Assembly: GCF_035594765.1 (NCBI RefSeq)
Contig: NC_085841.1
Coordinates: 258,064,689-258,128,688 of the forward strand
DNA from: Anolis carolinensis
Taxonomy: Eukaryota
Direction of reading: 5' to 3'
Length of the DNA: 64,000 bases
Shown here: piece after piece, positions 12,223-57,622 of the stretch
Numbering within the stretch: the first letter of the stretch is position 1
Layout: each line of letters starts with the position of its first letter
The notes under the pieces: generated by a model
What the model saw: only the letters and a program-made list of their open reading frames with translations
The model's database searches: none
Told to the model about the DNA's origin: nothing
Position numbers and translations under genes: made by a program

Positions 12223-12262
<40 letters not shown>

Positions 12263-15139: not shown

Positions 15140-15432
15140 GCCCCTCTCCGCCCCCCTGATTGGGCGGGGCCAAGGAGTAACTATGGAAACGGAGGCGACC
15201 CCTGTCGGGCGCTTGTGAGGACGAAGCGCCACCCTGAGCTGTGCCTACGTTTGCAGCCTAAAGAGGAGGCTACGGGTAGAGCGGCTCCGACCCCATAGCG
15301 GAAGTGACGTCTTCATCCCTAAGTCAAGCCCTTCTCTATGGAGCACAGGTCCCGCTCCGCTTGACATCCGGGCGAGGATCGCTAGGCTTTCTGCGTAGTG
15401 GTGTCCATGGAGATGGAAGATGGCGCCTCGCA
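15140..15432 (+). promoter_or_regulatory. TMEM216 promoter: GC boxes, inverted CCAAT, X-box GTAACTATGGAAAC (15177-15190), ETS-CRE composite CGGAAGTGACGTC (15299-15311)
   Basis: Motifs read directly from the sequence in a CpG-rich stretch just upstream of coding exon 1. Confidence 0.75.
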
Positions 15433-18133
15433 GTAAGTGGTGCCAGGGACTGGGGAGGTCATACTGCATTAATTCTACGATATAGATGCACCCAGGGTCA
15501 CGTTGGGACGAGCTGTGACCCTGGAAGGAAGTGGGGAAAGGAAAGGAGAACTGAGGGAGGAGAAAGGGGAAACCTCTCTTCAGTCAGTAGTCCGAATATA
15601 TGGAAGATCCAGACTCAGCAGTATGGATACTGTGTTCTTGAAGGCTTTCATGGCCGGAATCACTGGGTTGCTGTGAGTTTTACGGGCTGTATGGCCATGT
15701 TCCAGAAGCATTATCTCCTGGCATTTCTCTCACATCTATGACAGGCTTCCTCAGAGGTTGTGAGGTATATTGGAAACTAAGCAAGTGGGGTTTATATTTC
15801 TGTGGAATGCTCCGAGTGTGAGAAAGAACTCTTGTCTGTTGGAGACAAGTGTGAATGTTGCAATTAATCACCTTGCTTATCATTGACAAGTCTTGCAGCA
15901 AAGGACAAGGGGATCCTCTCCCCTCTGCAGGAGTCTACCATATACCATGCAGCTGTGGACAAGTCTACATAGGGACCACCAAATGCAGCATTGCCCAAAC
16001 ACAAATCAAGGAACATGAGAAGCACTGCAGACTAATCCAACTAGAAAAGTCAGCCATAGCAGAGCACTTGATGAACCAACCTGGACACAGCCTATTATTT
16101 GAGGACACAGAAATGCTGGACTACTCCAACAACTACCATGTCAGACTTCGCGTAGAAGCCACTGAAATCCACAAGCATGTGGACAATTTCAACAGAAAGG
16201 AGGAAACCATAAAAATGAACAAAATGGCTATCAGTATTTAAAAACCTCTAAAATCGGGACAGTAAATAAAGAACAACACTCAGAAGACAGGGGAATTGAA
16301 GGCATGAACAATCAGGGCCAGCTAACACCTCCCAACAAAGGATTCCCCCAGACAGTAAGCAGCTAGACCTTGAAGCCTATAGGTTATTCATTGCTAATCA
16401 AGGTGGCCATTTGCAACATTCACACCTGCCACAGGAAGACAAGTGTTCTTTCTTCCACTCTGAACATTCCACAGATATATAAACCCCACTCGTCTAGTTT
16501 CCAACACCTCACAACCTCTGAGGAGGCCTGCCATAGATGTGGGTTCAATGTCAGGAGAGAATGCTTCTAGAACATGGCCATACAGCCCAGAAACTCACAG
16601 CACCCCAGTGGTTCCGGCTATGAAAGCCTTTGACAACAGTATAGATGGGTTGGCAAATCCTGAGGTCCCCTTCATACCACGTCGTTAAAGTGCTATGATC
16701 CCACTTTAAATGGGATCTTGTGGGATCCTGTGGCATTGTTACATGTATGTATAGCTCGCCTTTTCTCTTTTAAGAGTGACTCGAAGCAGCTAACAATGCT
16801 AAAAACAATACAACTCACAATTTGAAATCTAACACATATAAACACTAAAATAGAATTAAACATTAAATATTAAAATAGCTAAAACAATCAAAACCTATTA
16901 AAATAATTAATTTGTTCAGAGGCACCAGAGGAGCTCTCTGGCTAACCATGCCTCTTCCTAAGCTTCCAGTTCTAGGATTCCAGGGCATGTTGCCATGGCA
17001 GCCAAAGTTGGATATAGTGCTTCAGTGTGTGGTATGAGAGGATCCTTCCACTCTGTTACCTTGCCTACAACTCTTGGCCAGTCATGGGGTGCATCTTCAC
17101 TGTGAAATTAATGCAGTTTGACACCACTTTAACTGCCATGTCTCAATATGGAATCATGGAGATGTAGTTTTACACAGCCTTTATTTTTCTTTGCCAAAGA
17201 TTGTTGGGGCCTCAGGATCTAATAGAATTTTGCTGTGGCAAAGTGGCAACAAACTGCACTAATTCCTCTGTGCAGCTGCACACATGGTCCAGATACTATT
17301 TCTGCTCCCCCTTGCAAATTCTCTGCAGTGAGTCTTAGTTTTACCTTGGACAACTATAACCTAGCCATAATCTTATTGTGCAAGTTTTGCAAGTGCCATA
17401 ACTGCATCAAGACTGATTTTTTGCCATTTGGGGCTCATTGTTATGAAATGGTGATGTATTGTTCTGATCCTCTTTGAGAGAAAATGTGGGTGGAACAATG
17501 AAAGGCCTGTTCCATAAATATTCTTGTTCTGGTTGTACCCGCAGATCGGCAACTGTCCTCTACCCCTCTGGAGATTCTGCTGTTCCTTAATGGCTGGTAT
17601 TATGCCACGTATTTTCTGCTGGAGATTTTCATGTTTGTCTATAAAGGTGAGCATTAACATCTAACGGATGGGGAGGAAGCATGGAAGAGCATGGCTTGGT
17701 TTCCCTTCTGCAAAATGAATCACTTGGGGCAAATCTCCTTTATGATAAGTGAATGTTGTATTGTCTGGTTCATTCCCCATTTTAGTTACTAATTGTTTGA
17801 GAGTTCAAGGTTTTTGCAGACCCAATTTGTCACATTTCCTATTTTTTAAGTCTGTCTACTGCCTTAGATAAGAAATAAACTTGTTCAAAAACACAGGGTA
17901 GATCTAAATAATAATAATATTAATAATAATAATACCAACAATAATAACAAGTTGACAATTTGACTTTTTGAGTAGCTTGCAATAATTGTATTAGATGTTT
18001 TTAAATATGTTTATTACTGATCGTAAATTTGTTATATAGGTTATTTTTTTACATGTGTACATTGTTTTGTATTTAACATAATGTTAACCACTTTGGGTCT
18101 CGTTTAGGGAGAAAAATTGGATACAAATAAACA

Positions 18134-18193
<60 letters not shown>

Positions 18194-21100
18194 GGCTAGA
18201 TCTACATTGTACAATTAATGCAGTTTGACCTCACTTTAACTGCTATGGTTGAATGTGGAATCATGGGACTTGTAGTTTTGCAAGGCCTTTAGCCTTCTCT
18301 GCCAAAGAATTCTGATGCTCATCAGGATTCTATAGCTTTGAGCCATTAAAGTTAAAGTGGGGTAAAACTGCGTTAATTCTACAGTGTAAATGTGCCCACA
18401 GTGGCTGGTATCTGTTAGTTATGGTTAATATTGATTAGAGTAGCCCTATTTAGTACATTGCTGGATGATGAGTCACACAGAGATAACTAATTAATTCAAT
18501 GGATACACTCTAGGTAGGACTAAAAGATTTAACCCAGTGTGTTGCGAGAGGTATCGGCTATTCTTTCTCTCCCTCTTTTTTAATTAATATAGCAATTTGT
18601 GTATGTCCACAGGACTCCTATTGCCCTATCCTTCTGCTAATCTGGCTTTGGATCTGGTTATGCTCTTCCTCTACCTTGGAATTGAAGTTACAAGGATATT
18701 TTTTGGTGAGTTTCAAACAATGGATCCTGATATCAAAAAACAGCACATTCATCTTACAGTGACAAGAACACATTCTGCAGTCTGTTTGCATTGGTCAAAG
18801 TAGCATATTTTAAGGAGAATGTGTGACTGCCATAGACATTGTCATTTTAATCCTTTCTACTGTGCTGTACCAGAAAAGAGGTCTTGAGGTGAAACAGAAA
18901 GGGGCAATTCCTATTCCATCCTCTCAGAACAGTCTTTTTTACATTCTCATTCAGAAGTAGATAAGGACCATAGCAGCACAAGATAAGGTGGAATAGTAAT
19001 TTAAGGTTTCTCCAGTCAAGCAGGACTAACTAGAACTATTGTAGGTGAATAATAATAATAATAATAATAATTTTATTCTTATATCCCGCCCCATCTCCCC
19101 GGAGGGACTGTAAAATCCAAAGTGTCATTCTTGAATCTGAATTGGGATTCAGTTCTTCAGTTTTAGTGGTTCTTAATAGCAGACTGGAAGTGTGCTTCAG
19201 GTAGAATGCATAGGAGAGCAGTCCTACCATTAACCAGAGTGGGGCTTTTGTTTCTGGCCGTATTGAAGCATTTGATCCAACAAGCCAGAACTTGACTGGC
19301 ATTTGTTACCCCAAAGACCTTTTTATTGGCTGCCACAAGACTAGAATGATCTGCAGAAGAGATCCATCAGTTAAAGAGCTGTTGGAATTTAAGGCACAAC
19401 TGAAGACCTATCTCTCCTGGCAGGCCTACTCAAGGCCCTTCTACACAGCCATATAAACCAGATTATCAAGGCAGATAATCCACAATACCTGCTTTGAACC
19501 AGATTATCGGAGCCAAAGATCAATCACCCCAAAACCCTACCTGTATGCACAGTTCGGCATGATAGGGCTGTGTGCCAAGTTTGGTCCAGATCCGAAGTTG
19601 GCTGGGTTTAGTGCTAACTATATAAGGGTGAACTACAACTCCCAGAGCCGAAGGAGAATCACCCCTAAACCCTGCCTGTATGCTCAGTTGGGCATGATGA
19701 GGCAGTGTGCCAAGTTTGGTCCAGATCCGAAGTCGGCTGGGTTCAGTGCTAACTATATAAGGGTGAACTACAACTCCCAGAGCCAAAGGAGAATCACCCC
19801 AAAACCCTGCCTATATGCTCAGTTGGACATGATGAGGCAGATAATCCAGTTCAATGTGGATTTTATACAGCTGTGTGGAAGGGGCCTCAGTCAATTTTAA
19901 CATGTGAATTTTTTTCTGCATTTTATTGATGTGGTCTTGTGTCATATCTAATAGTGTTGTGTTTTATTGTTCTTCTTTAGCCATGTTGTACCCTGCCTTG
20001 AGCCTCAAGGAAAAGCGAGTTATTATTACTATTACTATTTATTTTCTGCCCATCAAGAAAGGGCGGTAAGCAGATACGTTATTATATTTTTCCTGCCAGA
20101 GCTGGAGAGAACTGCTTGTGAATTTTAGTTTTATTTGTTGATCTTGCATACCAAAAGACTTTGACTGTGTACCTTGATGTGAGCTCTTTGTTACTGTTCC
20201 TCAGGCATCAGAAGGTTTTTAGGTTAACCCTGACCTGACATCCTGTTCAACCTCCTGTAGGTTTATACTAAATCTAAGTCCTTCACCCGTCTTATTTTGT
20301 GTATGGTAGGCTCAAAAGGGAACCTATGCCAGCGGAAAGTACCACTTGCCATCAGTCTGGCACTAACCTTTCCTGCAGCAGTGATGGCAGCCTATTACCT
20401 GCTACTACAAACCTATGCCCTGCGGCTGGAAGCCATCCTCAATGCGATCCTGCTTCTCTTCTATGCTGTTGAACTGTTGCTGGGCATTCTTACTCTGGCC
20501 GCCTTTTCCAGGTACCCTCTTGTGAACGTTTTTGCTATTTCAGGGAAAAAGCCATGTGTGTTCTTGGTTGACTTCTCTACTCCATGGTTTGAGAAGTTTG
20601 AGGATACATCCATAGTTAAGATCTCAGAGAGACTGTGTGCTTCATTAAAAAGAGGAACTAAGATCAGAATTATGTAATAGCAGGCTTCTCGATATGTGGA
20701 AATAAGGAAAAACAGTTGAGGAGAAGAGATGGTCAATTTTACAACACTCAGGCCCCCTCTACACTGCCATATAAAATCCAGATTATCTGCTTTGATAATC
20801 TGGATTATATGGAAATGTAGTCTTGTATAATCCAGTTCAAAGAAGATACTGGGAATTTTCTGCTTTAATAATCTGGATTATCTGGATAATCTGGCAGTGT
20901 AGAAGGGGCCTAAAACAGCATGAATAGATGGAATATAGGATAGTGTCTTATATTTAGATGGATTTGGGTCCATTTAGCGCTTAGCTGTACTGAAGTAGGA
21001 ATTATGTAGCCCTTCAGGTGGTTCAATGATAATTACCAAGAATTCTCATCATTGGCCATATTGAAAGTTGCAATACAACTGATTATGGAAAGATGCTTGA

Positions 21101-23027: not shown

Positions 23028-23227
23028 TCAGTAGTGGAACAGAGTTGCATTAGATGGGTCTGAAGCTCCAGCCCACAATCGGCCTCCTTGTTCAGCCACC
23101 AAAAACTTGTTGTTGGATGCTCTGATTACAAGGCAGGTTGAGGATGCAAATTGGATTGTGAAATTTGAGGGATGGTCACTGGTGATGGAGATCTGTCCAT
23201 CTTTTTCCAAGGCCCAGCACTTGTTTT
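23028..23227 (-). CDS. Fascin-like exon 7 (ENKCWALEKDGQ...DPSNATLFHY*)
   Basis: CTGCAG acceptor; the C-terminal LFHY corresponds to fascin LWEY; TGA at 23030-23028. Confidence 0.9.
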
Positions 23228-26200
23228 CTGCAGATAAGTGGAATGAAAGTAGGGAAGTCAGGGAAGATGCAAGCAGAAGAATCTACACTTTTGGATTTCC
23301 CTGACTTCTAGCTGATTGAAGGAAAATTATATACAGGCAGTCCTCAAGTTACGAACAAGATGGGTTCTGTAGGTTAGGGAAGGATTAACACCCCTCTGGT
23401 GTTTGTTTTGCTGCCTGCCCCTGTTCAGAGGATTTCATGTCATTTTCTGTCCCAGTGACTGGATTTTGAAAAAATTGGCTTGTTATGGAAGCAAGGAGTG
23501 GTGATAAAACTTCAGCTGAGACACCTTTCCCCCATAACTTTCAGGAGTGAATTTCCCTTCCTAGGAGTCGATTTTGCTCACTTACTGTTGTCNNNNNNNN
23601 NNNNNNNNNNNNNNNNNNNNNNNNNNNNNNNNNNNNNNNNNNNNNNNNNNNNNNNNNNNNNNNNNNNNNNNNNNNNNNNNNNNNNNNNNNNNNNNNNNNN
23701 NNNNNNNNNNNNNNNNNNNNNNNNCAGGGCAGATTACAGGCAAAAGATTGCAAACATTCAATGCCAGATCCAATACATAAATTAAAAAAAGTAAAGTGAT
23801 CACTTGATCTACATCTAACATAGGAAACATTAAGCACAAATTATATAAACAACATGTAACATTAATTTAAATCATTATTAAAATATAATACAGCCAATGA
23901 AGCCATCGGGGTCAAAGGAATCAACTAAGCCAAAACCAGCTAAGTCAGTATGGTGACAAATTTGGAACAGGTCTAGTGAGTGAATGTAAACTTCTAGTCA
24001 TCCTATCCATTTACCAGTGTACAGAAATAAGTTTTTAACTGTTTCATGAAGGAGAGGAAGGTGGGGGCAGTTTTTATTTCTTTAGGGAGGAAGTTCCAGA
24101 GGTGGGGGGTGACCACAGAGAAGGCCCTCTCTCTCGTTCCCATCAGCAATGCTTGAGATGGAGGTGGGACCGAGAGTAGGGCTTCCTCCACTGACCGCAG
24201 TGTCTGAGTTGGTATATAAGAGGAGATGCGGTTTGACAAAAAAGCTTGGACCTGAGCCATTTAGGGCTTTAAAGATAATGACCAGCACTTTGCATCTAGC
24301 CTGGAGCTGCCGCAACATGGGAATGGTTCTCTCCCTGTGGGGTGTTCCTGTTAGTAACCTGGTCGCCGATTTTTGTACTAATTGAAGTTTCCAAACTGTC
24401 TTCAAAGGCAGCCCCATCCAGAGAGTTGCAGTAGTCCAGACGGGATGTGACTAAGGCGTGGACTATCATGGCCATGAGTTGTTTGTAAGTCAGGTGTTTG
24501 TAACTCGGGGACTCCATATAATTAGAATGTGTTAGTAATAGAAAGTATTACTACCAAGTGTGACTTGCAGCATTCATTGTTAATCTGGTGCTTTTCAGAT
24601 CTCAAAATCCTAAAGTTGGAACAGCCCACCCTCATTCAAGCACTCCTGACAAATGGCCATCCAGCCATTGCTTAAAAGCCTCCAGAGAAGGAGACTTTAC
24701 CACACTCCGTGGCCACATATTCCACTGTTGAACAGCTCTTATTGTCAGGAAGTTTTTTTTTTATAATCCCACGAATCCCTTGCCAGTGTGGCAAGTGGTC
24801 AGAAATTCTGATATTCCACAATACTTGCAGGACCTTGGGTTGGGGAATACATTGATAAAAAATACAGTAGGAATGTGAATAATGACATTTGAACAGTAAT
24901 TTGTCCTCAACTACACCAGAAAGGCTAGATGCCATGTGTGAGTGGGAAAACCTATTAGGCAGGAGAACAGTGTAGTTTCTTAGGGACCTAATTACACTGC
25001 CTCAGTCTCCTGCCTCCCTTTAATTTGGGATGAAAAAGATGGTAATTAATTATGCCTTTGGTTCTAATCAAGTTATAAACTAGAGCAGTGGTGCCTGAAC
25101 CTTGGTCCTCCATGTGCTTTGTACTTCAATCAGAATTCCTGACAATTGGCCAAGCTGGCTGGGGCTTGTGAGAACTGAAACCCAAACCCCCTGGAGGACC
25201 AACAGTTGGGAACTACTGAATTAATGTTCTTTTCTTTAAACTTTAACAATGATTACCAATGCAAGCAGGACATACCAATTTGGAAATTGTAGTAGCCTTC
25301 CTCAGTGAGTGACAGGCTGCTGGGAACATAGCTGACACAGTTCCCTTCCAACCGTCTCACGTCGGAGCCCAATCCTACATAGCCGGCATCACTGTGCAGG
25401 ACTAGCAGTGGCCGGTTCACCAGTACCAGCAAGAAATCTTCAATTTTTCCTGGAAATGCAAAAGAAAATATTTGACAGTATCTCTCTCACAGTGGACGGG
25501 TGGTGTTCGAATAGAATCATAGAACAATAGGCTTGGAGGAGACCACATGTGCCATCTAGTTCAACCCCCTGCCATGCAGGAAAAGCACCATCAAAGCAAA
25601 AGCACAATCAAGCAAAAAAGAATTAAACTTCCATTTCCTCACTTAACAAAGACTGTAAAGCAAGAGAGAAAAGTCTCTGGATCCCCTTCAGACACACAGA
25701 ACTATTCAAAACTTGCAGTCTGTGTCCACCAACCCACTCATGTTCACTTGTCAATACAAAAGCCTCCTGCAAGTTAGATAACTTCTCAGTTGATGTGTAC
25801 CTGCAGCTTTGGGAATGGCCAGCAGTTGTCCATTTGGTCGCATGGACACATATTTGTCCCCTATGCGAAGCATCACCTTCTGGTCCTGATAGTGAAGATC
25901 AAACCAGACGTTCTTGTCTTGTTTACTGCTGCTGATAATACAATCATTGGGGCCCTGTGAAAGTGGAAAATTTAGCTGGAAATTATTCAGCGCTTCTACT
26001 TTTCATATTTATATTTTATTGCTGGCTGTTTCGTCTTGCTTCAAGGCTGAGAATGAATGCTGTTGGGGTGAGTGACACAATCAGAGTACACTAATGCATA
26101 ATCTTAGGAGGAAATGGAATAGCCACGGTGATGTTCTCAGAGATGGTGAACATTACAATGTGGAGTAGTAGCACTCTGCTGCCATCTCAGGCAGCTGGCT

Positions 26201-29200
26201 CTGCCACTTTTAAGCCAGCCTGTTGCTCACAGGTAGTGGTGGAGGATGAGCTGCCACTGAAGTCAGACTTAGCTGCAAGTCAGCTGTAGGTGAGATGGGA
26301 TACCACCTTGACCTTCACCTTGGGCAATAAAATGGCTTCTGCAAAACCTACAAAGCAACACTCTGCCTGAGAGTAGTCAAACATATACTGGAAAAAGGTG
26401 GCAAGAGCTCTTACTAGCATTCAGGAGCAATGGGTATCTTGCGTCCTTCTATATACCAATTTCATTCTTGCTATATTCGTCTTTCATTTGTGCCCCCATC
26501 ATTCTATATTAAAAATTACATTCAATATAGGTGCATTTTCTTTCTCAGACTGGATTTAGGTCCCTTTCCCCCAGTGTAATGCTCTAGACTTCAGCTCCTC
26601 ATTGATCCCAATCAGCATGGCCAATGTTAAAAAATACTGGAGCTTGTATTCAAAATAAGCCATTTCCGTTGACAAACAGCTTTTATCATCAGGTTGTTCC
26701 CAATGTTAAATGGAATCATCTTTCTTGTAATTTGAATATACCAATTTGGGTCTTCTTTGGAGAAATAGAAAAAAAAGGTTGCTCAGTCTTCTGGATGATT
26801 AACCTATTAGATAATTAAAGAAGCCTGTCATATTAGATTTCAGTCTTCTCCAAGCTAAATATACCTATCTCCCTCAATTATTCCTTACAGTGCTTGGTTT
26901 CAGTGCCAGGTTAGCATCCTGTTTAGTGGCCTCTGTCAGTGTAACCCTGGTGTTTCCCTTTGTTGTTGCAGAGTAGAGATTCTCAAACATTTTCAAGTTG
27001 CAACCCCATTTTATACAGGCAATGTGACCCACAATCCCGATACATTAAAATAGGTGAGCCACGTCCCCAATACATTAAAAGTTAGAGCTGTTGGTGCTGC
27101 TACAGTGACAACTATGGTGTCTGGTCCTTACAGCACTGCTCAGCTTGTGGTTAATTTTTAGCTGGCTGCTTGGCTGGCTAAAGAAAGGAAATAACATGAT
27201 GTGCTGGGTGTCAAATTTCTGGAAGCATGATCATTTGATTCATTTCGACAGGATTTAGGCTTGTGCATGGATTTAAATTGGTTAGTTCTCTTTGGCCAAT
27301 TCAGCTTGTTCGCCTTGGTTAGCTGGCCGTTGTGGTAAGGGCTTAGCCACCATGGTTTTTTTGCCTGAAACATCCCATGTGGCTGCCAGGCATGGCTTCT
27401 TCCCTTCTATTTGGGAGTATGCTGCACGTGGTTCCTCAATCCAGTTCCTCAAACCCAGACTCCCTGGCAAGGAAGAAAGGAAAGGGTTCCGGGAGGGGTG
27501 TTTTCTTAACCTCGTTGCTCAAACTTGGGCTCCCTTGAAAGGGAGAAAGGATCCCAAGAATGGAAAGGGGAGCCTCCTAAGTCCCCCATTCCTGCCAATG
27601 GGCCGGATCTTCCCAGATCTTTTGGCTGCTTAGCTAAAAACAGTTTTCTCCATTAGCTGATTTTTGGGAGGCTGCTGAAAACGGATCTGGGTAACCAACG
27701 AAATTCAGATACCAAAAACAGATTGCCCTCCAGCAAAATTGCACAAGCCTAATAGGATTTATTGTATTGTGCAGAATTCTCCAGTATTGAAGAAAAAATG
27801 TTGCCACTTTCAAGAAACAAAACTAGGCACTCAGCACACATGGATCACTAAGAATTGAACAAGCACAAGCCGAGCAGAGCCTGCATTCCATAGAGCCAAT
27901 CACTGAACTTCGCATGAACCTGAACCTCATAACAAGCTAACCCACTGAACAAACGATTGTTACATGTTTACGCAAACAAATCTCTGTGTACGACACAATG
28001 AGATGATTTTTTGTTTTCCCTTTTTAACATTTTCATAGCTCACCACTGCCCGGTGACCCCACAAAAAACCTTTCACGACCCTATGGTTTGGAAACCACTG
28101 TTGTAGAGGAAGCAGTTCAATTCATACAGTGATACCCATTTCCCTCAAAATCATCTGTCCCCTGCTGCTCCCCTTCAGGACATGACACTGTGGTGACTAG
28201 TGGCAGACAAGAAGCATTTGGCTGTGTCACTATAGCAGGATGTGTGACGTTGAAGGAATTCTTTGGGATCTCATAGGACTTAAGGTGTCAACAGCAGCTC
28301 CTGGAGGATGATGTTATTGTTATGCACCTGGCACTAGGGATATGAACAGCTGCTTCTCATTTCCCCCCACTCTCCACTACATAGCCATATGGGTAGGCCA
28401 GCAAGAAACCAGCTTGAAGGAAGAAGAATGAGGGAGATGGATGTAGTTCAACTTTCAGGCATTTTCTCCTGACACAGGTGGTTTTGGTCCCAGACTCACC
28501 AAGGACATGTATGTGCCACAGTAGCCACGGAAGCAGATTTTCTTTGTGGCATCATCGAATAGCAGCTGGAAGATCTCTGTGTTGCCAACAGCCATAGCAT
28601 TGGCATAGAGGTCAGCTCCTGTCGGAACATAGAAGCAGAGAGCCCAGTGACTACACCTTATAATGTAAAGCACACTGATCTCACTCTGACATAAAACTAT
28701 TTCAAATACCATTGCTGGCTGAGGTGAGGCTTGAGTGCAATACAATGGAAAGTCTATAGTACTTGTATGTAAAACTGATATTTGTAAGAAGACCCCAATG
28801 ATATATGATATTCCCTTTAGAAACTTGATTAAGGGTGCACTTAGTATTAAGTGTATACCTGGATTCTCATCCCCATTTACATCTAGATTTCTTGAGTCCA
28901 ATGACAGATAGTTCTCCACATACAATGGTGTTACTATGGTGCTGCTCGGAGTATGCACTGCAAAGGATTTGCATGCAAGATACTGCCACATGCTTAAAGT
29001 AATCTATATTGAAGGCGGGAAGATCTTGGGAAAGGTAAAAGGTAAAGGTTTTCCCCTGACATTAAGTCTAGTCATGTCTGACTCTGGAGGTTGGTGCTCA
29101 TCTCCATTTCTAAGCTGAAGAGCCGGCATTGTCCATAGACACCTCCAAGGTCATGTGGCCGGCATGACTGCATGGAGAGCTGTTACCTTCCTGCCGGAGG

Positions 29201-32200
29201 CAGTATCTATTGACATACTCACCTTTGCATGTTTTCAAACTGTTAGGTTAGCAGAAGCTGGTGCTAATAGTGGGAGCTCACCCTGCTTCCTGGATTCAAA
29301 CCACTGACCTTTTGGTCAGCAAGTTCAGCAGCTCAGCGATTTAACCCAAAGTGCCACCGGGGGCCCTAATCTTGAGAAATGTCTCATATTTTCTACAACT
29401 TACACTATTCAACACTTCAAGTTCTTGCTTTTCAGCTTAATTTGTCCCACTTCTATTAGCCATCTTTTCTGACTCACTGGCACTTTTTTTGGCCATCTAC
29501 CCATCACAAATGCATCCACCCCTTATATGTTCATTTAATTTACCCCAATAACCACTTTCCCCTCAAAACGTCTCCAGATCAGCTTCCATGGAGTTCTTCC
29601 TTCTCAGTCTACAACTTATTCTGCACTGTTCTTCAACTTTCTTGCCTTTGAGATTCTTGAACCATTCATAGAATCACGGAGTTGGAAGAGATCCCAAAGG
29701 CCATCCAGCCCACCCACCCACCCGCCATGCAAGAACACAAAATCAAAGCACCTTCGAAAGATGCCCATCCAGCCTCTTCTTAAAACTCTCCAGGGAAGGA
29801 GACTCCACTACACTTCCAGACAGCATATTCCACTGCCAAATAGCTCTTAACCACTAGAAAGTTCTTTCTAATGTTTAGGTGGAATCTCTTTTCCTACCAT
29901 TGGAATCTATTGCTCCCTGTGTTCTAGTCTCCAGAGCAATAGAAAAAAGGTTTGCCCTCTCTTCAATGCGACATCCTTTCAAATATTTAATCATGGCTAT
30001 CCCATCTTCTGTATTTGCTACAATTTCCTTCCATTCTTTCTTTGGCCTCACAAGTGAGCCTCCTTTCTAGATTTCAGCCAAACAAATCATTTCTCCAGGA
30101 ACAGAACTACAAACATTCCTTTCCTCTTGAGCAGGAGAAATGTTTATGGAATGTCCCTGGTCATCAGACCAGATCGGTAAAATCAGTGCCAGGGAAGTTT
30201 TACCCCCCATGAGTGGCATCCTATATTGATAATGCTGCCTGCCCTCAACCTACCTGGTCTGCAGCAGATGAACTTGTTAGTAGAAAAGGAACGCAGCGAA
30301 ACCTGGGCAGGGCTGGATTCCATACTGAAGAGCTCATCTCGTCCAGGTTTGTCCATCTTTACAGTTTTTATGCCACCTTCTCGCGCGCTCAAGTACTTCC
30401 CTTCATCATCCCGCAGGGCAACCAAGCCACCATTCACTTCCAGGGAGTACAAGGTTTCAGGGCCGATATCTGATACCAGTGAGCCATTGGCCGCCAACAT
30501 TTTGCCAGTCCCATTCCTTAAGCCATACTTTTTCACTGAAGAGCAGAAGGAAAAAAGAGGAGAAGTTATTAGGGACTTATGTTTTACTCACCAAAAACAG
30601 CCTCCACCTGAAATAATGTCTGCAGAGCAGTATCACAATCGGTGCTTTTCTCTCTTTGCAGAATTGCTGAAGGAACAGATCCTGCAGCATCAAGTAATTT
30701 CCAACACACTTGCCCTCCTCACTCTTGATCTTTCCCATGGTATTTCCCACCCCAGTCCAACGGGTTTTCTTTCTACATCAATGCTGCAGATCCTTGTCAC
30801 TTCTTTAATATATTGTTTGAGGTTAATTGTCTCTTACTTTTATATTTATTTGGTGCTACCATTACACCTGCTTTTCTTATATTTATTTCATTGCTATATT
30901 GGGGAGAATTTATGTATGTTCCTCCTTGAAATAGCTAGGCAACATGCCCTCGCATCCAGTTAAAATGCATCAATGTACACACAAAGATCTTAACCGGGTC
31001 TGATCTCAACACTTTGCTATAATTAGGAGGAGTTGTCACAGTTACCCAAGCCAGTGGCCATGCTGGCTGGGGGATTCTGGGAGTCCAAAAAAGTAACTTT
31101 CCCATGCTATGCCCCAGTTAATGAATGCTGTTAAAGAAATCAAGATTTCTGCCATCCATAGTGACTTGCTGGGTAAACAGAATTTGAATTCACCTGGTGC
31201 ATATGGGGACAATTGCCTTCTGTCAGCATTGTGTGCCACGGACTCCCGACCTATTGAGGAGATGCAAATGACTCAGGCTTAACTTCTTCACACATTAAAA
31301 GAAACGCAGAGAACTAATTTAGAAGTTGCTTGGGGCAGCTAACTGCACTTAATGTGGGTTTGGGATTTTAGCAGACACCTGGTTTATAAGCCCCACTCAA
31401 TAAATTACCAAGTTGCATGTTATCACAGAAAAGCAAGCTACACCACCATATACTTCCAAGACAGAGAATCTACAAAAGAAAGACATGGGCATTCCCATGG
31501 ATAGTTTACACAACAAAGTGGAGTGAGGAAGCTGCTTCGGGAAGCAGATGCTAGGGGAAGGCAGCAGTAACAACCCTACATGTTTTCTTCTTGAGTGTTT
31601 TTGGATATTTCCTTATGTTAGAGGACAAGAGTTGTGTTTGCCTTGTGATCAGATTTTTATCTTTTAAACCAGTGGTTCTCAGCCTGTGGATCCCCAGTGT
31701 TTTGACCTTCAACTCCTAGAAATCCTAATACGTAGCTGGTAAACTGACTGGGATTTCTGGGAGTTGTAGGCCAAAACACCTGGGGACCCACAAGTTGAGA
31801 ACCACTGCTTTAAACTACCCACTCTGCTTTACAGTGATGGAAGATTTTGTTTCATTCCAACTCTTGGAGTAAGATTAAATTGCTAGTCCAGTTAATTCTG
31901 TACTTATTCCACAGACAAGAGGGAAAGGGGGGGGGGGGCGGGCGGCAGAGGAAAGCAGGAAATGCATCCTACCCCAGCAAGATCCGTCTTCAGGGATGGA
32001 CAGCCACCCCATGACATTTCCCCGCTTTCCTCCGCTTCTGTGTGCTATCTTCTATTGGACTCCAGACGGACTCCAAAGACTGTCTTCACAGGCTGGGGAG
32101 ATGGATTTCAATGCACAGCTGTGCGTCATGGGAAGAACTCTGAGGGACTCCGTTACATCAGCATGACAAGATGGTCAGAAAATTGGGAAAATTTAGTGTG

Positions 32201-35200
32201 GGATAAGGTCCCTAGAAGAGGGAACACCATTCTGTCATTTGCCTCAAGGAGCAAAGTATCTTGGGCTTGCTTTGATTTCTCTGATTTTTTTTAATGTATG
32301 TAGGTGCTAAGTGTTGTGTCATTCCTCCACTTGGATTGTCACCAATAACTGTTGTTTTTTGCACATGTAAAAACATGCCTACTTATTTGAGCAGCACTGA
32401 TTTATTCCAATGGCTATTTACAGGATTTCTAAACAATTTTAACCATTTAAACCTGTTTTAGCTTGATGATATGTATAATTTGTATTTAGTCTATTTAAAA
32501 TAATCTTATTGTTTGGTATTATTTTCACCTGTCAGTATTGATTTTACCTGTGTGCCACCTTGAGATCATTTGATGTTGGGGAGAACAGATATATATTTAA
32601 AAGACTAAATAAGAGGATTTTCTGCAATACACATTCAAACATACTTCAACTGCATATTTCATATTTCTATGGGATGCTTTTCAACAATAATTTAATAGAC
32701 TGTTTGTAAGAAATTTGTAGCCAGACTATCCAGGACAGGGCAGGAGAGGAAAAAATACCTCCCACCATAAGACCGTAATTCAATTGAAGAATAACAAAAT
32801 CATGAATCATTTTTGCAAAGGAGGGTGTGGTAGAGAGTCTTGTTCTTTTCACAAGCCTTGCTCAATAAAAAAGTCATTCTAAATGAGCACTCCTATACCA
32901 CAAAAATGCTATCTTTATGGTTCACATAATTATATAGCCAAGTTGCAGGTATGCATGGCAGGGGATATATTACTTTGAGCGGCTCATGCAATGAGGACAG
33001 GTATGTGTGTACCTCACCCCAGCGTCTTCGGGTCAAATACCATGCAGCTGGACCCACAAATAGACATTAGACCCTGCAAAGCACACTAATTATACCATAA
33101 ATAATATTCAGTCATGTTCTGCATATACTGTAGTGCCTGGTAGATTGAACAGAACTGTTGTATGCAGCAATAGGGGATTAGAATTATTGCATTTTCTCCA
33201 GGTACAAAAATTGTGTGTATGTGTGGAGGTGAGATACTCCTCTTCCACAACAGAAATGAGGGGCACAAGGGAGACTTTGCAAAATAATACATAGAGTGAA
33301 CAAAGTGTATCTAAGGTACAATTAACTGCACAGAAGAAATCGACTCTACACCCATTCCTTTCCACCAGATCAGAGATAGTTGAGAGTACTAAGCAATGAC
33401 CCTGATCTAGCTCAAGTTCGTCACAATTAATGCAAGCCTAGTGCTTTCAATTGTACTTACAGTGCTTTCCTATGTCAAGAAAGCAAATATTTCAGAAGTG
33501 AACATTGCCATATTTAATGGAGTTTCCTTTACACTTAGGATCAAAGGGTGCAGCTACATTGTAAAAGTTTGACACCACTTTAACTCCCAAACAGAATGGG
33601 ATTTGTGGCTTGGTGAGACACTCTTTGGCAGACTTGTAAAATTACAACTTCCATGATTCCGTAGCATTCAGCCATTCAAGTTCAAGTGATGTCAAACTGA
33701 AATAATTCTATAGTGCAGATGCACCCACAGTCTAAATCATGATTAGCTTATAACCGAATTGGAAGCTTTATTGTTTAATGTTGTGGGCTTTGCTCATTCT
33801 AAACAGTAGGTAAAGGTTCTCCCCTGACATTAAGTCTAGTCGTATCCGACTCTGCGGGTTGGTGCTCATCTCCATTTCTAAGTTGGAGAGCTGGCATTGT
33901 GCATAGACACCTCCAAGGTTATGTGGTTGGCATGACTGCATGGAGCACTGTTACTTTCCCACCAGAGAGGTACCTATTGATCAACTCACATTTGCATGTT
34001 TTTGAACTGCTAGGTTGGCAGAAGCTGGGGCTAACAGTGAGAACTCACCCCACTCCCTGGATTTGATCAACCGACCTTTTGGTCGCAAGTTCAGCAGCTC
34101 AGCGGTTTAATCCATTGTGCCACCTGGGGCAAAATATCTTTCTTAAATGTAATTTGTTGCCAAGGGATTAAAGGGTATACCTCACTTCTTGACTGTCTAG
34201 CTTTTATGATTTCAAGCTCAAATTTTGGGGGACAATTTAAAGCCAAGAATTTTACATTGGAAAAACTGTTTTCTTATCCTCTTAACATTTCACAGATGAA
34301 AACTTCTATCATATGTGGTCAAGATGGCAAATGTTATTAATTAGGAACAACAGGAAAACTATAAGAGGCTGGAGACGTTTGTCATAGCCTGACAAATCCT
34401 GAGTTAACTGAGTGTAAATTATATTGAGGTTTGAACTCAATTTGCAGCAACTGAAGTATGCTGAGGACAAAGAGGAAAAATCACAAGGGGAGACATTTTA
34501 AAAGCAGTGGGATAACAGAGGATTAAGCAGGACCATCCCTACCAAATCAAGAGTGGGAGAGTGTGAGTTTCTGTCTGTAACTTCATTCTACCTAGCTACT
34601 GCATAATTCCTCATTTTTCATCACCCAGGTTTTCTGTGTGATAGATTGCCGTCTTTAAGTTCATAATTAATTAAGACCTTAGACAGAAAACATTTTTCGA
34701 CCACAAACCCCATAACTGGTCTGTTTGATTCTGTGAGCTGTAATCCAAAAAGGTCCAAGCTTTTGTTTACATGATATCAGAATGGACTTTAACCTCAAGG
34801 CTGAAACCTTATGAAAGGGAAGACAATTCATTTGAGAACATGTTTCTACCCACTTCTGAAATCATAGTAGACTGTGATGACGGATTCCGCTCCCCAAGGC
34901 ATGTCGCGATCACAGCGCAGCACCCCAGCTTTCTCATCACAGCGCACGTAACGCTTTTTGTTGGGGTTGAACATTGCAACATTGGGGTGCACTGCCAGGT
35001 GTAAGGTCCATTTTTCAGTTTCGGTGGCAACCTGGGCGAAGCAAGTGACATTCTCCTCTGCGCCACCCAGGTAGCGCTTGGACTGTTCATTCTGGAAAGA
35101 GACCTGTCATGAAGGAGGGAGAAATGGGAACTTCATCACCTGAGATAGGAAGAAGAGGAATATTCCCATTGACATTGAAGGTGGTATCAGAACAGAACAG

Positions 35201-37016
35201 CTAAGGCCATGTGATCGTGCAGAATTTTGAATTTTTTTTTCTGGGACTACATTGGGAGATTCTGAGAACTGTAGTCAAAAAAGATTTTTTTTAAGCTGTG
35301 TTGCTGCAATTATGATGTCTTGTGATCATGTTGTGGTCAAGTTGTCCTACTTGCTCAGTTATTTCTAGGCCTCCTGAAAGAGGTTAAATACTTTTGGTTC
35401 TCAATTTTTGGCCTCCCAAATGCTTTTGGATATTACCGTAGTCCCCATAATCCTTCAGTGCTGGCTATGCCAGATAAGGCTTCTCTGGGAGATCAAGTCC
35501 AAAGGCTGTGAAAGTAGGGCATTATTTTAAGGTACCCTTGACTGAAGCAGTTCTGCCATGGGTTTTTTTTTTATAAAGTATTCTAATGCATCTTTCCCTC
35601 TCAACCTCCAGACTCACTATCACTCTTGTGACCAACAGTGACAAGCATTGATTGGTTTTGGTCCACATGGCTGATTTCACAGGAAAAAAATCAGAATGTC
35701 CGGAGAGGAAAATATCTTCGACCAATTCCAGGACACATGGCATTCTCAGTTTTCAGACCCACCCTGAGATATTTCATTGTCTGAAGATGGAACAATCAGA
35801 TGGTGTCCCTTTTCTAGTCTAAATGAAGATGTGCCATACCCAAAGTTGGAAAAGCTATTGTGACACCCAGGACAGAAATTCTCACTAGTTCCTCTTCCTG
35901 ACACTAAAACACATTAATAATCATGCAAATAATAAACACTTTGCTTTTCTTTGCCTAATAGGAGTGCTGGCCCCAACAAGTAGATATACATGTTAGTATT
36001 ACACTGGCAGTGCAGGGAACAGCCATCTATCTATTTGCCCTTGAAATACAGATGCCAGCATGATGAGAAAAGCACATTCCCCATCACCAGCAACTGGTGT
36101 TTTCCCTCCTGCATTTGCTTCTTCTGCCTTTTATAGGGAAAATAACATCAATAGATTCACTTGCTGCCATAAAGAGAGAGCCCTGTTGCTGAAGACTGAG
36201 CAAAAATACTTTAAATAAAATATAACAAAATATTAAATAAATAACACTATGTAACAAAATTTGGAAAAAAATTCTGTTCCTGTTTTAAAAGTGTTATTTT
36301 CTGTATAATTGTTCAGCATTTACTTTCGAAGTAGTTCTTATACTCCAGAAACTTCTTTTTTGTGGCTGCCACAAAATATGTTGAATTGGTCGAGACTATC
36401 AGATATTCATTGAAATCCATAGCAAAATGTGTTGCAAGATGTCCTGCACAAAGTTTTCACAGTTTAATAAACTTTTCCATGTTTTTATGATAGAATTAGG
36501 AAATGACATTTATAACCCAGGAACAAAAAACGTGCTACATAGGGTAACAGATATTAAATACCCACACTTTGGGACAGCATGGAATAACTTGGGAGAGCTT
36601 ATTAATATAGCTTATTGTTCTAATATCCTCCCTAACCCCACTCCTTCTAAGCAGAATCCCAGTTTGAGAATGGAGATTAACAGTTTATGAATGTGTCTGC
36701 ACAATGTCACCTTGCCATCTGGATACTGATGGAGCAGAAAGAAGGTCTGTGGTCCTGGCTTATCCTGGTCACAGGTGATTTTGCCATTTGCGTCAGCTGC
36801 CAAGTAACGTTTCAGGGCACTGACCAGGTGAAGCTTCTGGCCAGCCCCTTCTCCAGGGCCGGCTGCCCCAGCGCCATGAGGGCTCACGAACTTAAGCACC
36901 CAGACCTGGCGAGGCTTCAGCTGCTTGCCAGTGGCCGACACCTGGAAGCGGAAGGGCTCAGCAGTCAGGTATCGGTTGGCTGCATTAACCAGGCCAAATT
37001 CTAGGGAGACAGTCAT
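23028..37016 (-). CDS. Fascin-family actin-bundling protein (four beta-trefoils), 494 aa, 7 coding exons; divergent paralogue not assignable to FSCN1/2/3
   Basis: Exons 37016-36711, 35103-34854, 30535-30254, 28618-28500, 25954-25801, 25449-25276 and 23227-23028 sum to 1485 nt with no internal stop. Start context is CCACCATG. Fascin motifs: FGLVNAANRYLTAE, RYLAAD, RYLGG..CFAQ..EKWTLHLAVHP, DRDMPWG, VALRDDEGKYL, GRDELF, VNRPLLVL. AATAAA on the - strand at 23002-22997. Confidence 0.93.
23593..23724. other. Assembly gap (N run) in fascin-like intron 6
   Basis: Run of N. Exons 6 and 7 join in frame without it, so no coding exon needs to lie in the gap. Confidence 0.99.
24000..24480 (-). mobile_element. 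L2-clade LINE 3' fragment
   Basis: Degenerate ORF2 peptides IVHALVTSRLDYCNSL, KLQLVQ..A.RLLTG and RAFSVV.P.LWN.LP. Confidence 0.75.
25276..25449 (-). CDS. Fascin-like exon 6 (GKIEDFLLVLVNRPLLVLHSDAGYVG...GYYNFQI)
   Basis: TTCCAG acceptor, G|GTATGT donor; contains the fascin NRP motif. Confidence 0.9.
25801..25954 (-). CDS. Fascin-like exon 5 (GPNDCIISSSKQDKNVWFDLHYQDQKVMLRIGDKYVSMRPNGQLLAIPKAA)
   Basis: TCACAG acceptor, G|GTACAC donor; phases fit the neighbouring exons. Confidence 0.88.
28500..28618 (-). CDS. Fascin-like exon 4 (GADLYANAMAVGNTEIFQLLFDDATKKICFRGYCGTYMSL)
   Basis: ACAG acceptor, GTGAGT donor; homologous to the fascin segment GMDLSAN...FQLE..TKKCAFR. Confidence 0.9.
29031..29366 (-). 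mobile_element. Sauria SINE
   Basis: Reverse complement of the 11787-12115 copy, with an (AAAGGT)n tail. Confidence 0.88.
29665..30000 (-). mobile_element. CR1 LINE 3' fragment (relatives at about 3380-3590, 24560-24760, 55790-56220)
   Basis: FKYLKGC-type coding remnant and a TTCTATGA-type 3' tail on the - strand. Confidence 0.7.
30254..30535 (-). CDS. Fascin-like exon 3 (MKKYGLRNGTGK...KFICCRP)
   Basis: TTCAG acceptor, G|GTAGGT donor; matches ORF 30183..30536. Confidence 0.9.
33808..34130 (-). mobile_element. Sauria SINE
   Basis: Same family as the other Sauria copies, on the - strand. Confidence 0.85.
34854..35103 (-). CDS. Fascin-like exon 2 (VSFQNEQSKRYLGGAEENVTCFAQ...DRDMPWGAESVITVYYDFR)
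   Basis: Polypyrimidine tract plus ACAG acceptor, donor A|GTGGGT, phase 1. The ORF track does not show this frame. Confidence 0.9.
36711..37016 (-). CDS. Fascin-like exon 1 (MTVSLEFGLVNAANRYLTAEPFRFQ...HQYPDGK)
   Basis: ATG at 37016, donor AAG|GTGACA, phase 0; aligns to fascin beta-trefoil 1. Confidence 0.9.
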
Positions 37017-37095
37017 GGTGGGACTAACCAAGGCTGGAATGGCACCAGCTCTGCAGAGTAGCCAGCTGGGACTATTTGAGATTCCTCCTGGGCTA

Positions 37096-37121
37096 TGAGG
37101 TCACAATGGGTGCCTAGCAAC
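37096..37121 (-). promoter_or_regulatory. Candidate RFX X-box (GTTGCTAGGCACC on -, 37121-37109) and CRE/nuclear-receptor-like TGAGGTCA (37096-37103) upstream of the fascin-like ATG
   Basis: One mismatch to the 13-bp X-box form GTTGCTAGGCAAC; lies 80-105 bp upstream of the start codon. Confidence 0.5.
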
Positions 37122-37466
37122 CAGGCAAACCCATCAAGTCCCACCCAAGAGATCAATCATCCAGCCTACAATAACAAAGTACTAGATTCATTTGGACCAC
37201 ACAATCCACCAGTGACACATAAGCAAGGCCACAAGATCCATTTACAACGAAGTAGAGTGCAAAGTAATGCGATCCTCAGGACTCAAAGCATTTAGAATCT
37301 GGAATGGACTAAACTCTTACCTTCTGCCACTCTACTCAGAAAAAGGTACGGTTCCTTTTTCAAAATAAGAATAAAGTTACAGTATTCACATTGACTTGCG
37401 GATAAGACAATCCAGGTTTTTTGGATTTATTTCCCTGAAATTTCTACTTATACACGAGTATATAGC

Positions 37467-38053: not shown

Positions 38054-41000
38054 GATATATAGGGTACTCATTTGTGTTCAAGGGCTGCATGTAACTACTA
38101 TGATGTACTCTGACACTGAAGGATATAGGCACTTTGACCTTTGGATGTGCTGGATACAGTTTCAAATTTAAGCACCAAAGAGTATGGCCAGAGATTATGG
38201 AAATACTCATGCAAAATATTTGATGGGGACCTGACTTTCTTAGTCGGTGAAAGCAGCTGGATCTTTGCAGGCCCTTTCACACACTTCTTTTGCAGCCACC
38301 TGTTTCGTCCAATAAGTAAAGGGGAGGATTATGACAAGGATATCAACTGATAGGCAGATTGAGCTCAGAAAAATCTTATCATAACTGTATTATACTGTAT
38401 CATATAATAGATTATTTCACCAACATTATAAAGATGGGTTACTATTACAATAAGAGCAAGCTTTGTTGGCTGACTGACTTTCAAGTGCAAGGCTATAAAT
38501 AAGAATGACAAATTAACTACATTTGAAAATTAACACGAGAAAATTACCCATATCAAGGTTTTGCAAATCTTTTAATAGATGCACCTCTCATTTAGTTTAC
38601 ATTTCCTCTTTCTGCTATTGACATTGTTCTATATGGAAGTCATTCAAATTCCTTCCAATTCATCTTCCCTGAAAATTGCATCAATTTTTATCAGAACCCC
38701 AATTTCCCCATCTCTACTCAATCTAACACCCATTTCACAAAGAAAAAATTACCAGTTTTAATAATTTCTAGGCCATTACCTATTCTCAGACCTTTGTTCA
38801 GCATTATGTGGGCAGAAGTTCTAAAGGCAATCACATATTTCCTTAGCTTGCAATGAAGGTCTGCTCAAGTGGACAACCAATAGTAGTTCTGTCTTTGCTC
38901 CAAGTTCATGGCAATTCTATCTTAAGGGTTTTCTTTGCAAAATTTATTCAGGGTTTCCATGGCTGAACAAGAATTTACTAGAGAACAAATTGTACTAGAT
39001 GGCTACCTGAAAATGATTTCAAAAGCCCTCAAAAGTCACCAGTTCTGAGATACGTCTCTTCTCTTGACAAGTGGAAGCAAGGGACAATGGCTTTGACTGT
39101 ACACCTCAAATGAATGGGGCCTTTTAACAGAAACATTCCTTCACCTCTGCTTAAAGAATGTCAAGATATTATATATGACCAAGAATTAGTGATTCCAGCC
39201 ACCTCTCGGTTTCATATTGTTTTGCAATAACTACAATTATTTTTATACCACTTGCTCTTATAATAAAACTAGAAATGTTCCAAATAATCTAAAGAGAAGG
39301 GTCATAATGGAACTTCAAATGTCTCTCCTCAAAATTCACATTAACCTACAAATGAGTTAGGGCTCTTTATTTTAGTTCCACAGAAATGCCATCTTCTCAG
39401 AGACGCAACTTATGTTCAGATACATAAGTTCAGAGGCACAAAGTGCAGAGACAGCCTGAAGTGTGTCTTAGGTGTAATGATGAGAAAGATTTTTAAGCTT
39501 TTAAAAAGGCATTTTAATTTCTGTACATAAAGTGGTTTTTAAACTAGTTTAGCATTACATAAAGCCATGGTTGTACAAGGGCTACACACCCAACCAAAAT
39601 CTCTTATTTATTCAATGCCAATTTTAAGTCACAATACCCACGCACCCGAACATCTTATTCTAGGGACCTCATCACACTAGAGCTTGGATCCACTTTAAAT
39701 CCATGTTTGGGAGGAGCCTTTAAACAGATTAGCCAAATAGCTCCTGGTCTCACCAAACAACAAACTCCAGAATTCTGCAGGAGGCAGAAACCGGATTTGA
39801 AGTCGATCCATGCTCTGGTGAGATGAGGCACTATAAAACAACTCACCATACCCCCATTTAAATCACAAAAAGAAAAAAAAATAAGCCATACAATGCAGTA
39901 TAAAAGATTGACAATATCATCAAGTTTATTACACAGTTTGCAACCTATCAGAAAAAGACAAACAAATTAAATCACAAAGAACAGGGGTGGAAGAGTCAAA
40001 GGGAAAACAAGGCTATGTTTCTGTCATTCGTTTCTTTTCTTTTTTTACTTCCATTATTTCAAAACAAACTAAAAAAGTCCCATTTTGTAAAAAGCAACAT
40101 TTCCAATCCAAATCTTATCCTTTACAGTTTAAGTTGCCACTCCATTTTTCTACATTTACTTTTTTCCTTTAAAAAATTGAGCTGAATACCTCTCAAAAGT
40201 ACAAAAGGAGGTATTGCATTACATTGTGACATCCTTTGATTGACACCATCCATCCTTATTTAGGCCACACAACCTCTGTGACACAAGACAGGATCCTTTT
40301 ATGAGGGGGTTTCACCATGCAGCTGGACAATCATGAATGTAATAGTTGTGTGGCCATGTCAGCAATCCAGGTGCTGGAAGCTACTTATTCCAGGATACAG
40401 TGTGTTATCGTAAGCTACTCAGTCTAGGATGGAGCACGGAAAACAACCCCATCCTCAAGGGTTTCATTTCAGAGATGAATTTGACCAAAACTCTGTAGCC
40501 ATTTCTTTTCCATAATACTCCTTATGTAGATGTTGATGGCACTGGCCTGAAGATGTTGCTGACTCAAAAGCCCTAGCAATGCCTCTGTCAGTTACACAAA
40601 GGTGATGTGAACTGAGGCTTTTCACTGTCTCAAACTGTAGACTGGGATGCCAGAAATCAGTGAGGTATGCTGCTGCCTGAAGCAAATTCATGGATGAACC
40701 CCCTCCATAGTGAATTAAATGTAAAATGAGGATGGTGTGTGAGGAAACTTCTGGACCTTAAATCAACACATACATCACACTGAATTTAAAACTGCTCAGG
40801 GTGTACTGTAAGGGAGAACTTCAAGAAAACCCCTCAGTTTGACTTAGACCCCATTCCACGCTACTGCGTTGGTCAGGTCTCAATTCACAGCACTTCCTTT
40901 GGAACAAGGAAGGTGACACTCTGGGAGGGGTGGTGCCTGGAAACAAGAGGGTTAAGGGAGAAGTTGCAACCAGAGCAGCTACAGTATAAAACAAAATAAG

Positions 41001-42333
41001 GAATCTATTAGCAAATCATCTGTGGATAGTGAGTGGACCTGCATTAGCCAGAGTTCAATCTATCTCTTAAGGGAAACTCCACACTGTGAGCAGTTTGACT
41101 AACACAGGCCCCTCTACAGGCAGCTAGGTGCCTTGGTTCAGGGACTAAGTGGGGAAAGGAGGCAAGAGAGGTGACTAGAAGCAGCAACCAGCCCACCCTC
41201 CATCCCAGAAGAAAGAGAGGGAGGAAATACTATTGTGTCTAAGCTGTAGACAATGGTGCTAGGGGACAAGACTGAAAGCTGTTTTGGGAAAAAGTTGAGA
41301 CTTTAGGAGGACTGGATGCCTTGGTGCCTGAGAAGACAACACAGTGCGGACTGTGGACACAAGCCCCAGTGAGACAATGGGCATACATCTTGTGCTGTGC
41401 AGAAGCACCACATTCTTCCTATAGAAGATAAGCCGGATGGATTCCTCCTCAACTGCTCTGAGAGAAGATATGGTAAGGGAAGAGGCAGGAGACCTCTGTG
41501 GGAAGCACCATTCTTCTTAGGTCCAAGAATCCATGGACTGAAGTGGCCCCCTGGTCACAGTGGCTCAGGCAAACTCCCCTCTCAAAGTCCCAAGTCATTT
41601 GAGTTTCTCCATCAAGCAGCAGCACAGAGAGGGAGGGCTTGGTGCCACAAGATGGAGTTCTACAGGCGAAGTCACTTCCAAGGGGTCCAGAAAGAGCAGA
41701 GGGCAGTGGGGAGGAGTGGGTGGAGAAGCCGCCACCCTTTAAGTCTTGATTAAGGAGAGGAGATAACGAGTCCATAAAAACACCGAATGCTTCCGAAGCT
41801 CCTAAAAAGACAACACAAAGTAGGAAAAAAGAGTAACTTCTATTGCCCAGTTAAAGACCATTATTTAGAAAGGACAAAAGTCTTGGCTAAACCTCGGGAC
41901 GTCAGCTGATATTTCTAAAGGAAAGAAGAGGCATTCTTTTGTTCGTGGTTAGGGTTCAAATCCAGGCTCAATCATTCAAGCATACTAAATATTAAAATAT
42001 TGCTTTCCCTCAACTGAGCACTCGCCTTTAGCATATAGTGGGGGGGGGGAAGTATTTAGTCAGATACCACCACCATAATTTGCAAATAAATTCATGAAAA
42101 ATCAAACAATGTGATTTTCTGGATGTGTTTTCTCATGTTGTCTCTCATAGTTGAGGTCTACCTATGTTAATCACAGGCCTCTCTAATCTTGTTAAGTGGG
42201 AGAACTTGTACAATTGGTATCTGAATACTACCCCCCCCCCCCCCCCGCACTGTATATCACAACATCTGTTTCCAACCTACAGAATAAACCTATTTGTCAC
42301 AATAACAAAGGCGAACAAACAAATTATGGTGAA

Positions 42334-43475: not shown

Positions 43476-43817
43476 GTGAATGTGCACTGGATCAGTTAAT
43501 CTCAGCGGAACAACTATACAGATTGTAGGTAAATCGAAACAAAAAAAAATTATTTTATGGGGAGTAACATCCCCTCCACTTGAAATTTCTTAACTCTCAG
43601 AAAATTCTGCAAAGAGAACACAAGAATATATTATGTATTTGTTCATAGTAGATAAAGATGCATGAACTTTCTGCAATATAAAGTCTTGCAGAATATGGGG
43701 AAAACTGACCGTATCTAGTAAGAATATACACAATGTGGTGATACAGTGTGGGTTTGTTTGGAAAAGGTAAAAGTACTGGAGAGGAAGTAGCACCCTGGAA
43801 AGATCACCTCACTTCTC

Positions 43818-57580: not shown

Positions 57581-57622
<42 letters not shown>

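Follow-up and report, generated by a model that had tools for sequence, protein, structure and literature searches.

In a review of the literature, vertebrates are counted with three fascins (PMC7698196), and a fascin gene lying between TMEM216 and CPSF7 in the lizard Anolis carolinensis raises the question of whether a fourth one exists and what its product does. The gene occupies the minus strand at 37016-23028 of the window, i.e., the whole stretch of 64,000 nucleotides analysed here (Table 1). Its seven exons, separated by introns that are all GT-AG, splice into 1,485 nt encoding 494 amino acids and a stop, and the product is 100% identical to the A. carolinensis RefSeq protein XP_016851051.1 ('PREDICTED: fascin isoform X2'). 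Pfam PF06268 matches it in four stretches (E 4.8e-49 for the whole protein), and five exons match the Fascin domain on their own with E 0.02 or better, the sixth match being weak. The stop-free, four-trefoil fascin of the original prediction was thus found as described, including all seven exons, although an eighth exon of 57 nt (31250-31194) had been missed. Added to the seven-exon model, this cassette gives the 513-aa isoform XP_008114097.1; it is also found in Sceloporus, and its 19 residues insert in a hairpin loop of trefoil 2. The Kozak context, which had been called strong, has the favourable A at -3 but A rather than G at +4, and the proposed polyadenylation signal is present 25 nt beyond the stop, together with a second AATAAA at 22183, both being candidates.

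Table 1. Features of the fascin locus and its neighbours in the window.
Feature	Position	Strand	Remark
TMEM216 (approximate span of matched exons)	15400..20520	+	tail to tail with fascin
Candidate polyadenylation signal AATAAA	22997..23002	-	25 nt past the stop; second AATAAA at 22183
Exon 7, coding part, 200 nt including TGA	23028..23227	-	
Assembly gap, 132 N, inside intron 6	23593..23724	.	flanks collinear with Sceloporus
Exon 6, 174 nt, phase 1 to 1	25276..25449	-	
Exon 5, 154 nt, phase 0 to 1	25801..25954	-	
Exon 4, 119 nt, phase 1 to 0	28500..28618	-	3' intron (codon 319, phase 0) diagnostic of the clade
Exon 3, 282 nt, phase 1 to 1	30254..30535	-	
Cassette exon, 57 nt, in frame, 19 aa	31194..31250	-	found in squamates only
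Exon 2, 250 nt, phase 0 to 1	34854..35103	-	equal size in turtle, alligator, frog and Sceloporus
Exon 1, coding part (aa 1-102)	36711..37016	-	first β-trefoil, actin-binding site 1 segment
Non-coding block directly 5' of ATG	37017..37230	-	79% identity to Sceloporus
CPSF7 (approximate)	39831..55360	-	upstream of fascin, same strand

The gene is real, intact, transcribed and spliced in the anole, as seen by comparing the exon junctions with sequencing runs from two studies, a check suggested along with the original prediction. Runs X7 and X12 were taken as RNA on the basis of their splicing pattern, because the introns are skipped exactly and are otherwise empty; runs X4 and X5, with thin unspliced cover, were excluded from the RNA evidence. 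A 3,525-nt contig of X7 (depth 697) joins exons 3, 4, 5 and 6 exactly, and X12 (depth 1,332) does the same for junctions 4-5 and 5-6, so these two junctions are exact in both runs and junction 3-4 in X7 alone. In both, contigs pass from the end of exon 6 (25276) directly to the first letters of exon 7, bridging the assembly gap. Lying wholly within intron 6, the N run cannot shift the fascin reading frame, and the corresponding Sceloporus intron, which is gap-free and shorter, is collinear with both of its sides. A loose contig end at 30535, present in X7 and X12, matches exon 2 ending at 34854, a fit that confirms the weak-looking donor at this position. Junction 1-2, outside the contig stretch aligned, is supported by comparison, as lizard, turtle, alligator and frog all have this intron; the cassette exon is skipped in the main contigs. 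Selection is purifying, as another of the suggested checks indicates: dN/dS (Nei-Gojobori) is 0.12 against Sceloporus and 0.21 against turtle, where dS is near saturation, and it reaches 0.32 between turtle and alligator.

Two other splicing candidates were rejected. A mini-exon near 33073-33018 has stops in the required frames, the true cassette being the one given above, and an exon 2 donor four bases further on breaks the frame, while the RNA supports 34854. On the 5' side, about 2,050 nt of the 3,525-nt X7 contig (contig 23) are unaccounted for by exons 1-7; this part might represent further exons upstream, an extended 5' UTR or read-through transcription out of CPSF7. Several non-coding blocks of the window between 37017 and 39700 are conserved with Sceloporus, and the one at 37017-37230 is a candidate 5' UTR or proximal promoter. 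The introns also hold two copies of a high-copy short repeat (29030-29345 and ~33805-34130), presumably Sauria SINE, which draw very high contig depth; an A>G at 29128 likely comes from other repeat copies.

The position of the gene between TMEM216 and CPSF7 was verified, as both flanking genes were matched in the window, CPSF7 with a conserved 3' block at 42021-39831 and a last coding exon near 43821-44000. TMEM138 and SDHAF2 flank this block (window 4900-13000 and 57000-61250), the latter recognised from translations only, in an order matching that of human 11q12. The order CPSF7-fascin-TMEM216-TMEM138 is kept in the olive ridley turtle and Sceloporus, the alligator has fascin-TMEM216-TMEM138, and in the tailed frog Ascaphus fascin is followed by TMEM216. 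Two annotation peculiarities were noticed in these loci: an unannotated 275-aa gene call lies between fascin and TMEM216 in Ascaphus (L003:16357-23998), and in Sceloporus (L010:26912-35931) the gene call fuses TMEM138 with TMEM216 into a single 262-aa product, by read-through or annotation merge. The gene immediately upstream of fascin in sawfish and white shark, on the same strand, belongs to the CPSF6/7 family and is, from its sequence, probably CPSF7. The last exon of this neighbour (L008:1440-1661 and L011:1-220) has the reptile CPSF7 spacing with a longer tail and looks intermediate; as that tail is presumably CPSF6-like, synteny in sharks is likely rather than proven.

Regarding its distribution, the gene is kept in reptiles as proposed, but it is not limited to them, since orthologues also occur in cartilaginous fishes, coelacanth and two frogs. 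Identity to the anole protein is 82-92% in squamates, falls to 57-61% in turtles and alligators and to 49% in the tailed frog, and is 41-45% in cartilaginous fishes, with further orthologues in Discoglossus and coelacanth. No bird, mammal or ray-finned fish member appeared in three homologue searches, which were word-limited and of restricted sensitivity, and the absence therefore rests mainly on a published search (Hara et al. 2018, BMC Biol 16:40; PMC5901865). In Table S10 of that study, the same gene is listed as 'elusive' (AmnPhylome_0002944_sub_003, fascin-like, LOC102565591) in alligators (Alligator XP_006264658.2), turtles, geckos, anole (XP_008114097.1), snakes and coelacanth, and as absent from Xenopus, gar, zebrafish and stickleback. 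The gene sets of 112 mammals and 68 birds, plus transcriptomes, gave 0 avian and 0 mammalian orthologues (PMC5901865), so the predicted absence in mammals stands and birds too are reported without the gene. Retention in at least two reptiles and an outgroup, without mammals and birds, is what defines an 'elusive' gene, and it is seen here in that listing and in our own searches.

The accessions of Table S10 match the fascin proteins found here, and the existence and loss pattern of the gene are thus already known as a catalogue entry, one row among 469 genes, paired with FSCN2 by BLAST score only, in a paper whose main text does not contain the word fascin (PMC5901865). In the literature searched, no study naming or testing the gene was found, and it is unnamed and unstudied there. 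The expectation that it would exist in databases only as an uncharacterised 'fascin-like' model was accordingly correct for its labels ('fascin' or 'fascin-like') but overlooked this table. Relative to that row, the shark and frog range, the synteny, the intron map, the loss of Ser39 and the cassette exon are added here. Some sharks also carry a second copy of this fascin, intronless in Scyliorhinus canicula (L002:10001-11464) and probably a retrogene; it has an open frame in several species and, unlike the intron-bearing shark copy, a Ser at the Ser39 position.

The intron set, which had been described as different from that of other fascins, is so by half: in anole numbering, the clade has introns 102/0 (tetrapods only), 185/1, 279/1, 319/0, 370/1 and 428/1, three of the six being private and the other three ordinary fascin introns. 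FSCN1 and FSCN2 have 279/1, 370/1 and 427-428/1 in common with the clade, with 329/2 replacing 319/0. Introns 185/1 and 319/0 are clade-specific and present from sawfish to lizard. Intron 329/2 is also present in the amphioxus fascin, and a 157-nt exon of the lamprey gene, running from phase 1 to phase 2, agrees with it, which makes 319/0 a derived character of the clade. Two peculiarities were seen outside the clade: anole FSCN1 (L005:10555-12523) is split into six exons, compared to five in human FSCN1, its additional phase-0 intron at codon 185 nearly coinciding with the 185/1 site, and the sea lamprey fascin (L009:10001-16252) has three introns in its 5' half at sites absent from the other mapped fascins.

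The proposed strong divergence was also found, the protein being 35-38% identical to FSCN1 and FSCN2, which are 60% identical to each other. Two trees, one quick and one careful, were built with amphioxus, a mollusc, an echinoderm and invertebrate-like sequences as outgroups, the careful one without 38 rows; four mammal-type FSCN1 proteins of uncertain origin were used in the all-protein comparisons and left out of the trees, none of which contained FSCN3. In both, the clade is fully supported (100/100), separate from FSCN1 and FSCN2, and its topology tracks the species tree. In the careful tree, it falls within vertebrate fascins (99/97), its stem measuring ~1.1 changes per site, and FSCN2 is monophyletic to its exclusion (100/100). 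It is sister to FSCN1 in the careful tree (91/82) and outside FSCN1, FSCN2 and lamprey in the quick one, while AU tests reject neither FSCN1+FSCN2 (p 0.16) nor the clade with FSCN2 (p 0.10). Such unsettled branching near FSCN1 and FSCN2 would be compatible with a gene that arose in the genome duplications of early vertebrates.

It is very improbable that the gene is a pseudogene, a gap artefact, or a copy of FSCN1 or FSCN2 that was translocated or duplicated in reptiles only. The sister position to FSCN1 in the careful tree, of modest support, and the plain RefSeq label 'fascin' could be read that way, but the canonical anole FSCN1 lies on a different scaffold, and true FSCN1 and FSCN2 occur alongside the orthologues of sharks, coelacanth and frogs; likewise, spliced transcripts cross the gap and dN/dS is far below 1. 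FSCN3 is a different matter because, with this paralogue absent from the trees, the clade could contain it. The gene might then be the non-mammalian orthologue of FSCN3, a copy having moved in an early mammal to the ARF5-PAX4 region and become a fast-evolving sperm protein, with loss of the original beside CPSF7, which would leave three lineages rather than four. This history is considered unlikely. In its favour, 'fascin-3' is the name under which the elephant shark orthologue was submitted (AFK10204.1), although it was probably assigned automatically. Orthology would also be favoured by a 119-nt exon of human FSCN3 that, as exon 4 does here, ends in phase 0, and by short motifs in common with this clade; on the other hand, FSCN3 is not known to have introns 102/0 and 185/1, a difference more in keeping with an early split than with a late relocation. 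The distribution seen so far is complementary, this gene being missing in mammals and FSCN3 being described beside PAX4 in 'human (and mammals)' and not in fish (PMC3563606), and a very divergent FSCN3 (28-29% identity to FSCN1) could escape the 2018 pipeline. Nevertheless, a GCC1-ARF5-FSCN3-PAX4 block has been reported as conserved in 'other vertebrate genomes', with the species unnamed (PMC3759438), and a search seeded with the C-terminal half of the clade gave no FSCN3, a weak point owing to its word filter.

If FSCN3 combines the 119-nt exon with the lack of the two 5' introns, it would form one branch with this gene, likelier as an old sister than as a moved gene. FSCN3 may then be the sister of this fascin, as a separate gene, and there would be two ancient vertebrate fascin branches, FSCN1/FSCN2 and a 319/0-marked one holding this gene and FSCN3; this arrangement is put forward tentatively, at slightly less than even confidence. 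The reading preferred here, on trees that were made without FSCN3, is that the gene probably represents a separate, fourth vertebrate fascin lineage. It would have arisen as an old duplicate, probably from the early-vertebrate genome duplications, stayed beside CPSF7 from roughly the time of the jawed-vertebrate common ancestor onwards, changed rapidly at first, and been lost independently in birds and mammals and probably also in ray-finned fishes and Xenopus.

As for the protein itself, structure prediction gives, with high confidence, a fascin-1-like fold of four tandem β-trefoils. The AlphaFold model has a pLDDT of 92.5, obtained with an input alignment rich in other fascins (single-sequence folding gave pLDDT 33), and Foldseek aligns it to solved fascin-1 chains with TM 0.81-0.90. 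Its sole low-confidence part (48-53) is a Gly/Ala-rich loop at about aa 45-58. Amniote members have a Gly/Ala-rich insertion of 9-11 residues just past the first actin-binding segment (window 36840-36885).

By cryo-EM, E27, F29, K43, R149 and R398 of fascin-1 were described as required for bundling, and S39 as the PKC site whose phosphorylation blocks actin binding (PMC12086090). With fascin-1 numbering taken from a big-cat FSCN1, E27 and F29 are kept in the anole protein, K43 is replaced by Arg and positions 149-151 read K-K-R, although R149 varies in amphibians and coelacanth. R398 is replaced by Gly, as in amphioxus, the residue being His in FSCN2, K471 by Val and K42 by Pro. Ser39 is Gln (Gln32 in the anole protein) and Ser274 is Cys; the Ser39 position is non-Ser in 12 of the 14 clade members and Ser in all six FSCN1, FSCN2 and amphioxus rows. 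Ser39 is a regulatory feature, and membership of the fascin family does not require it.

Since E27, F29, K43 and the basic 149-151 patch are either retained or replaced conservatively, the protein would, on balance, be expected to cross-link F-actin into parallel bundles via two surfaces, as in fascin-1. The substitutions at R398, K471 and K42 suggest that actin-binding site 1 may be weaker. As the Ser39 position holds Gln here and a residue other than Ser in most clade members, and Cys replaces Ser274, we infer an escape from the PKC off-switch, and control would then be exerted mainly by the site of expression and, in squamates, by the cassette exon. The main alternative, considered rather unlikely, is that this genuine old paralogue is an inefficient bundler, binding actin on one side or acting as a scaffold in a specialised cell type, a functional reading compatible with either evolutionary history. 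The long stem and ongoing fast change, K42P, R398G and K471V, the variable R149 of amphibians and coelacanth and the repeated loss in major lineages point in that direction, whereas the four trefoils, their spacing and E27/F29 have been kept for more than 400 million years, dN/dS is 0.12 in lizards and the amphioxus fascin is likewise without R398.

A lineage kept for more than 400 million years would correct the count of three fascins and may explain the origin of FSCN3, and as a natural fascin without Ser39, it offers a test case for the regulation of bundling without PKC. Should the arrangement in two branches hold, this gene would be the conservative, PKC-independent member, sister duplicate or direct progenitor of the mammalian sperm fascin. 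More practically, this gene and the true FSCN1 of the anole bear the same RefSeq name, 'fascin', a possible source of error in RNA-seq studies of reptiles. The impact is confined to one family, in which the existence and loss pattern of the gene had been tabulated before.

Compared to the known members, the protein resembles FSCN1 in its four β-trefoils, in introns 279/1, 370/1 and 428/1, and in E27, F29, K41, a basic residue at 43 and the basic 149-151 patch, but it is only 37% identical to the anole's own FSCN1, lies at another locus, and has 102/0, 185/1 and 319/0 where FSCN1 has 329/2. With FSCN2, it has in common the fold, three introns and the lack of R398, yet identity is 34-36% and FSCN2, which has Ser39 and 329/2, belongs to a separate, fully supported clade. 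FSCN3, the testis fascin, is also fast-evolving, and the ESM Atlas 'fascin-3' cluster matches this protein in features (0.96) and shape (TM 0.90), no better than other fascins do. Unlike FSCN3, whose neighbours are ARF5 and PAX4, this gene adjoins CPSF7 and TMEM216, outside the GCC1-ARF5-PAX4 block.
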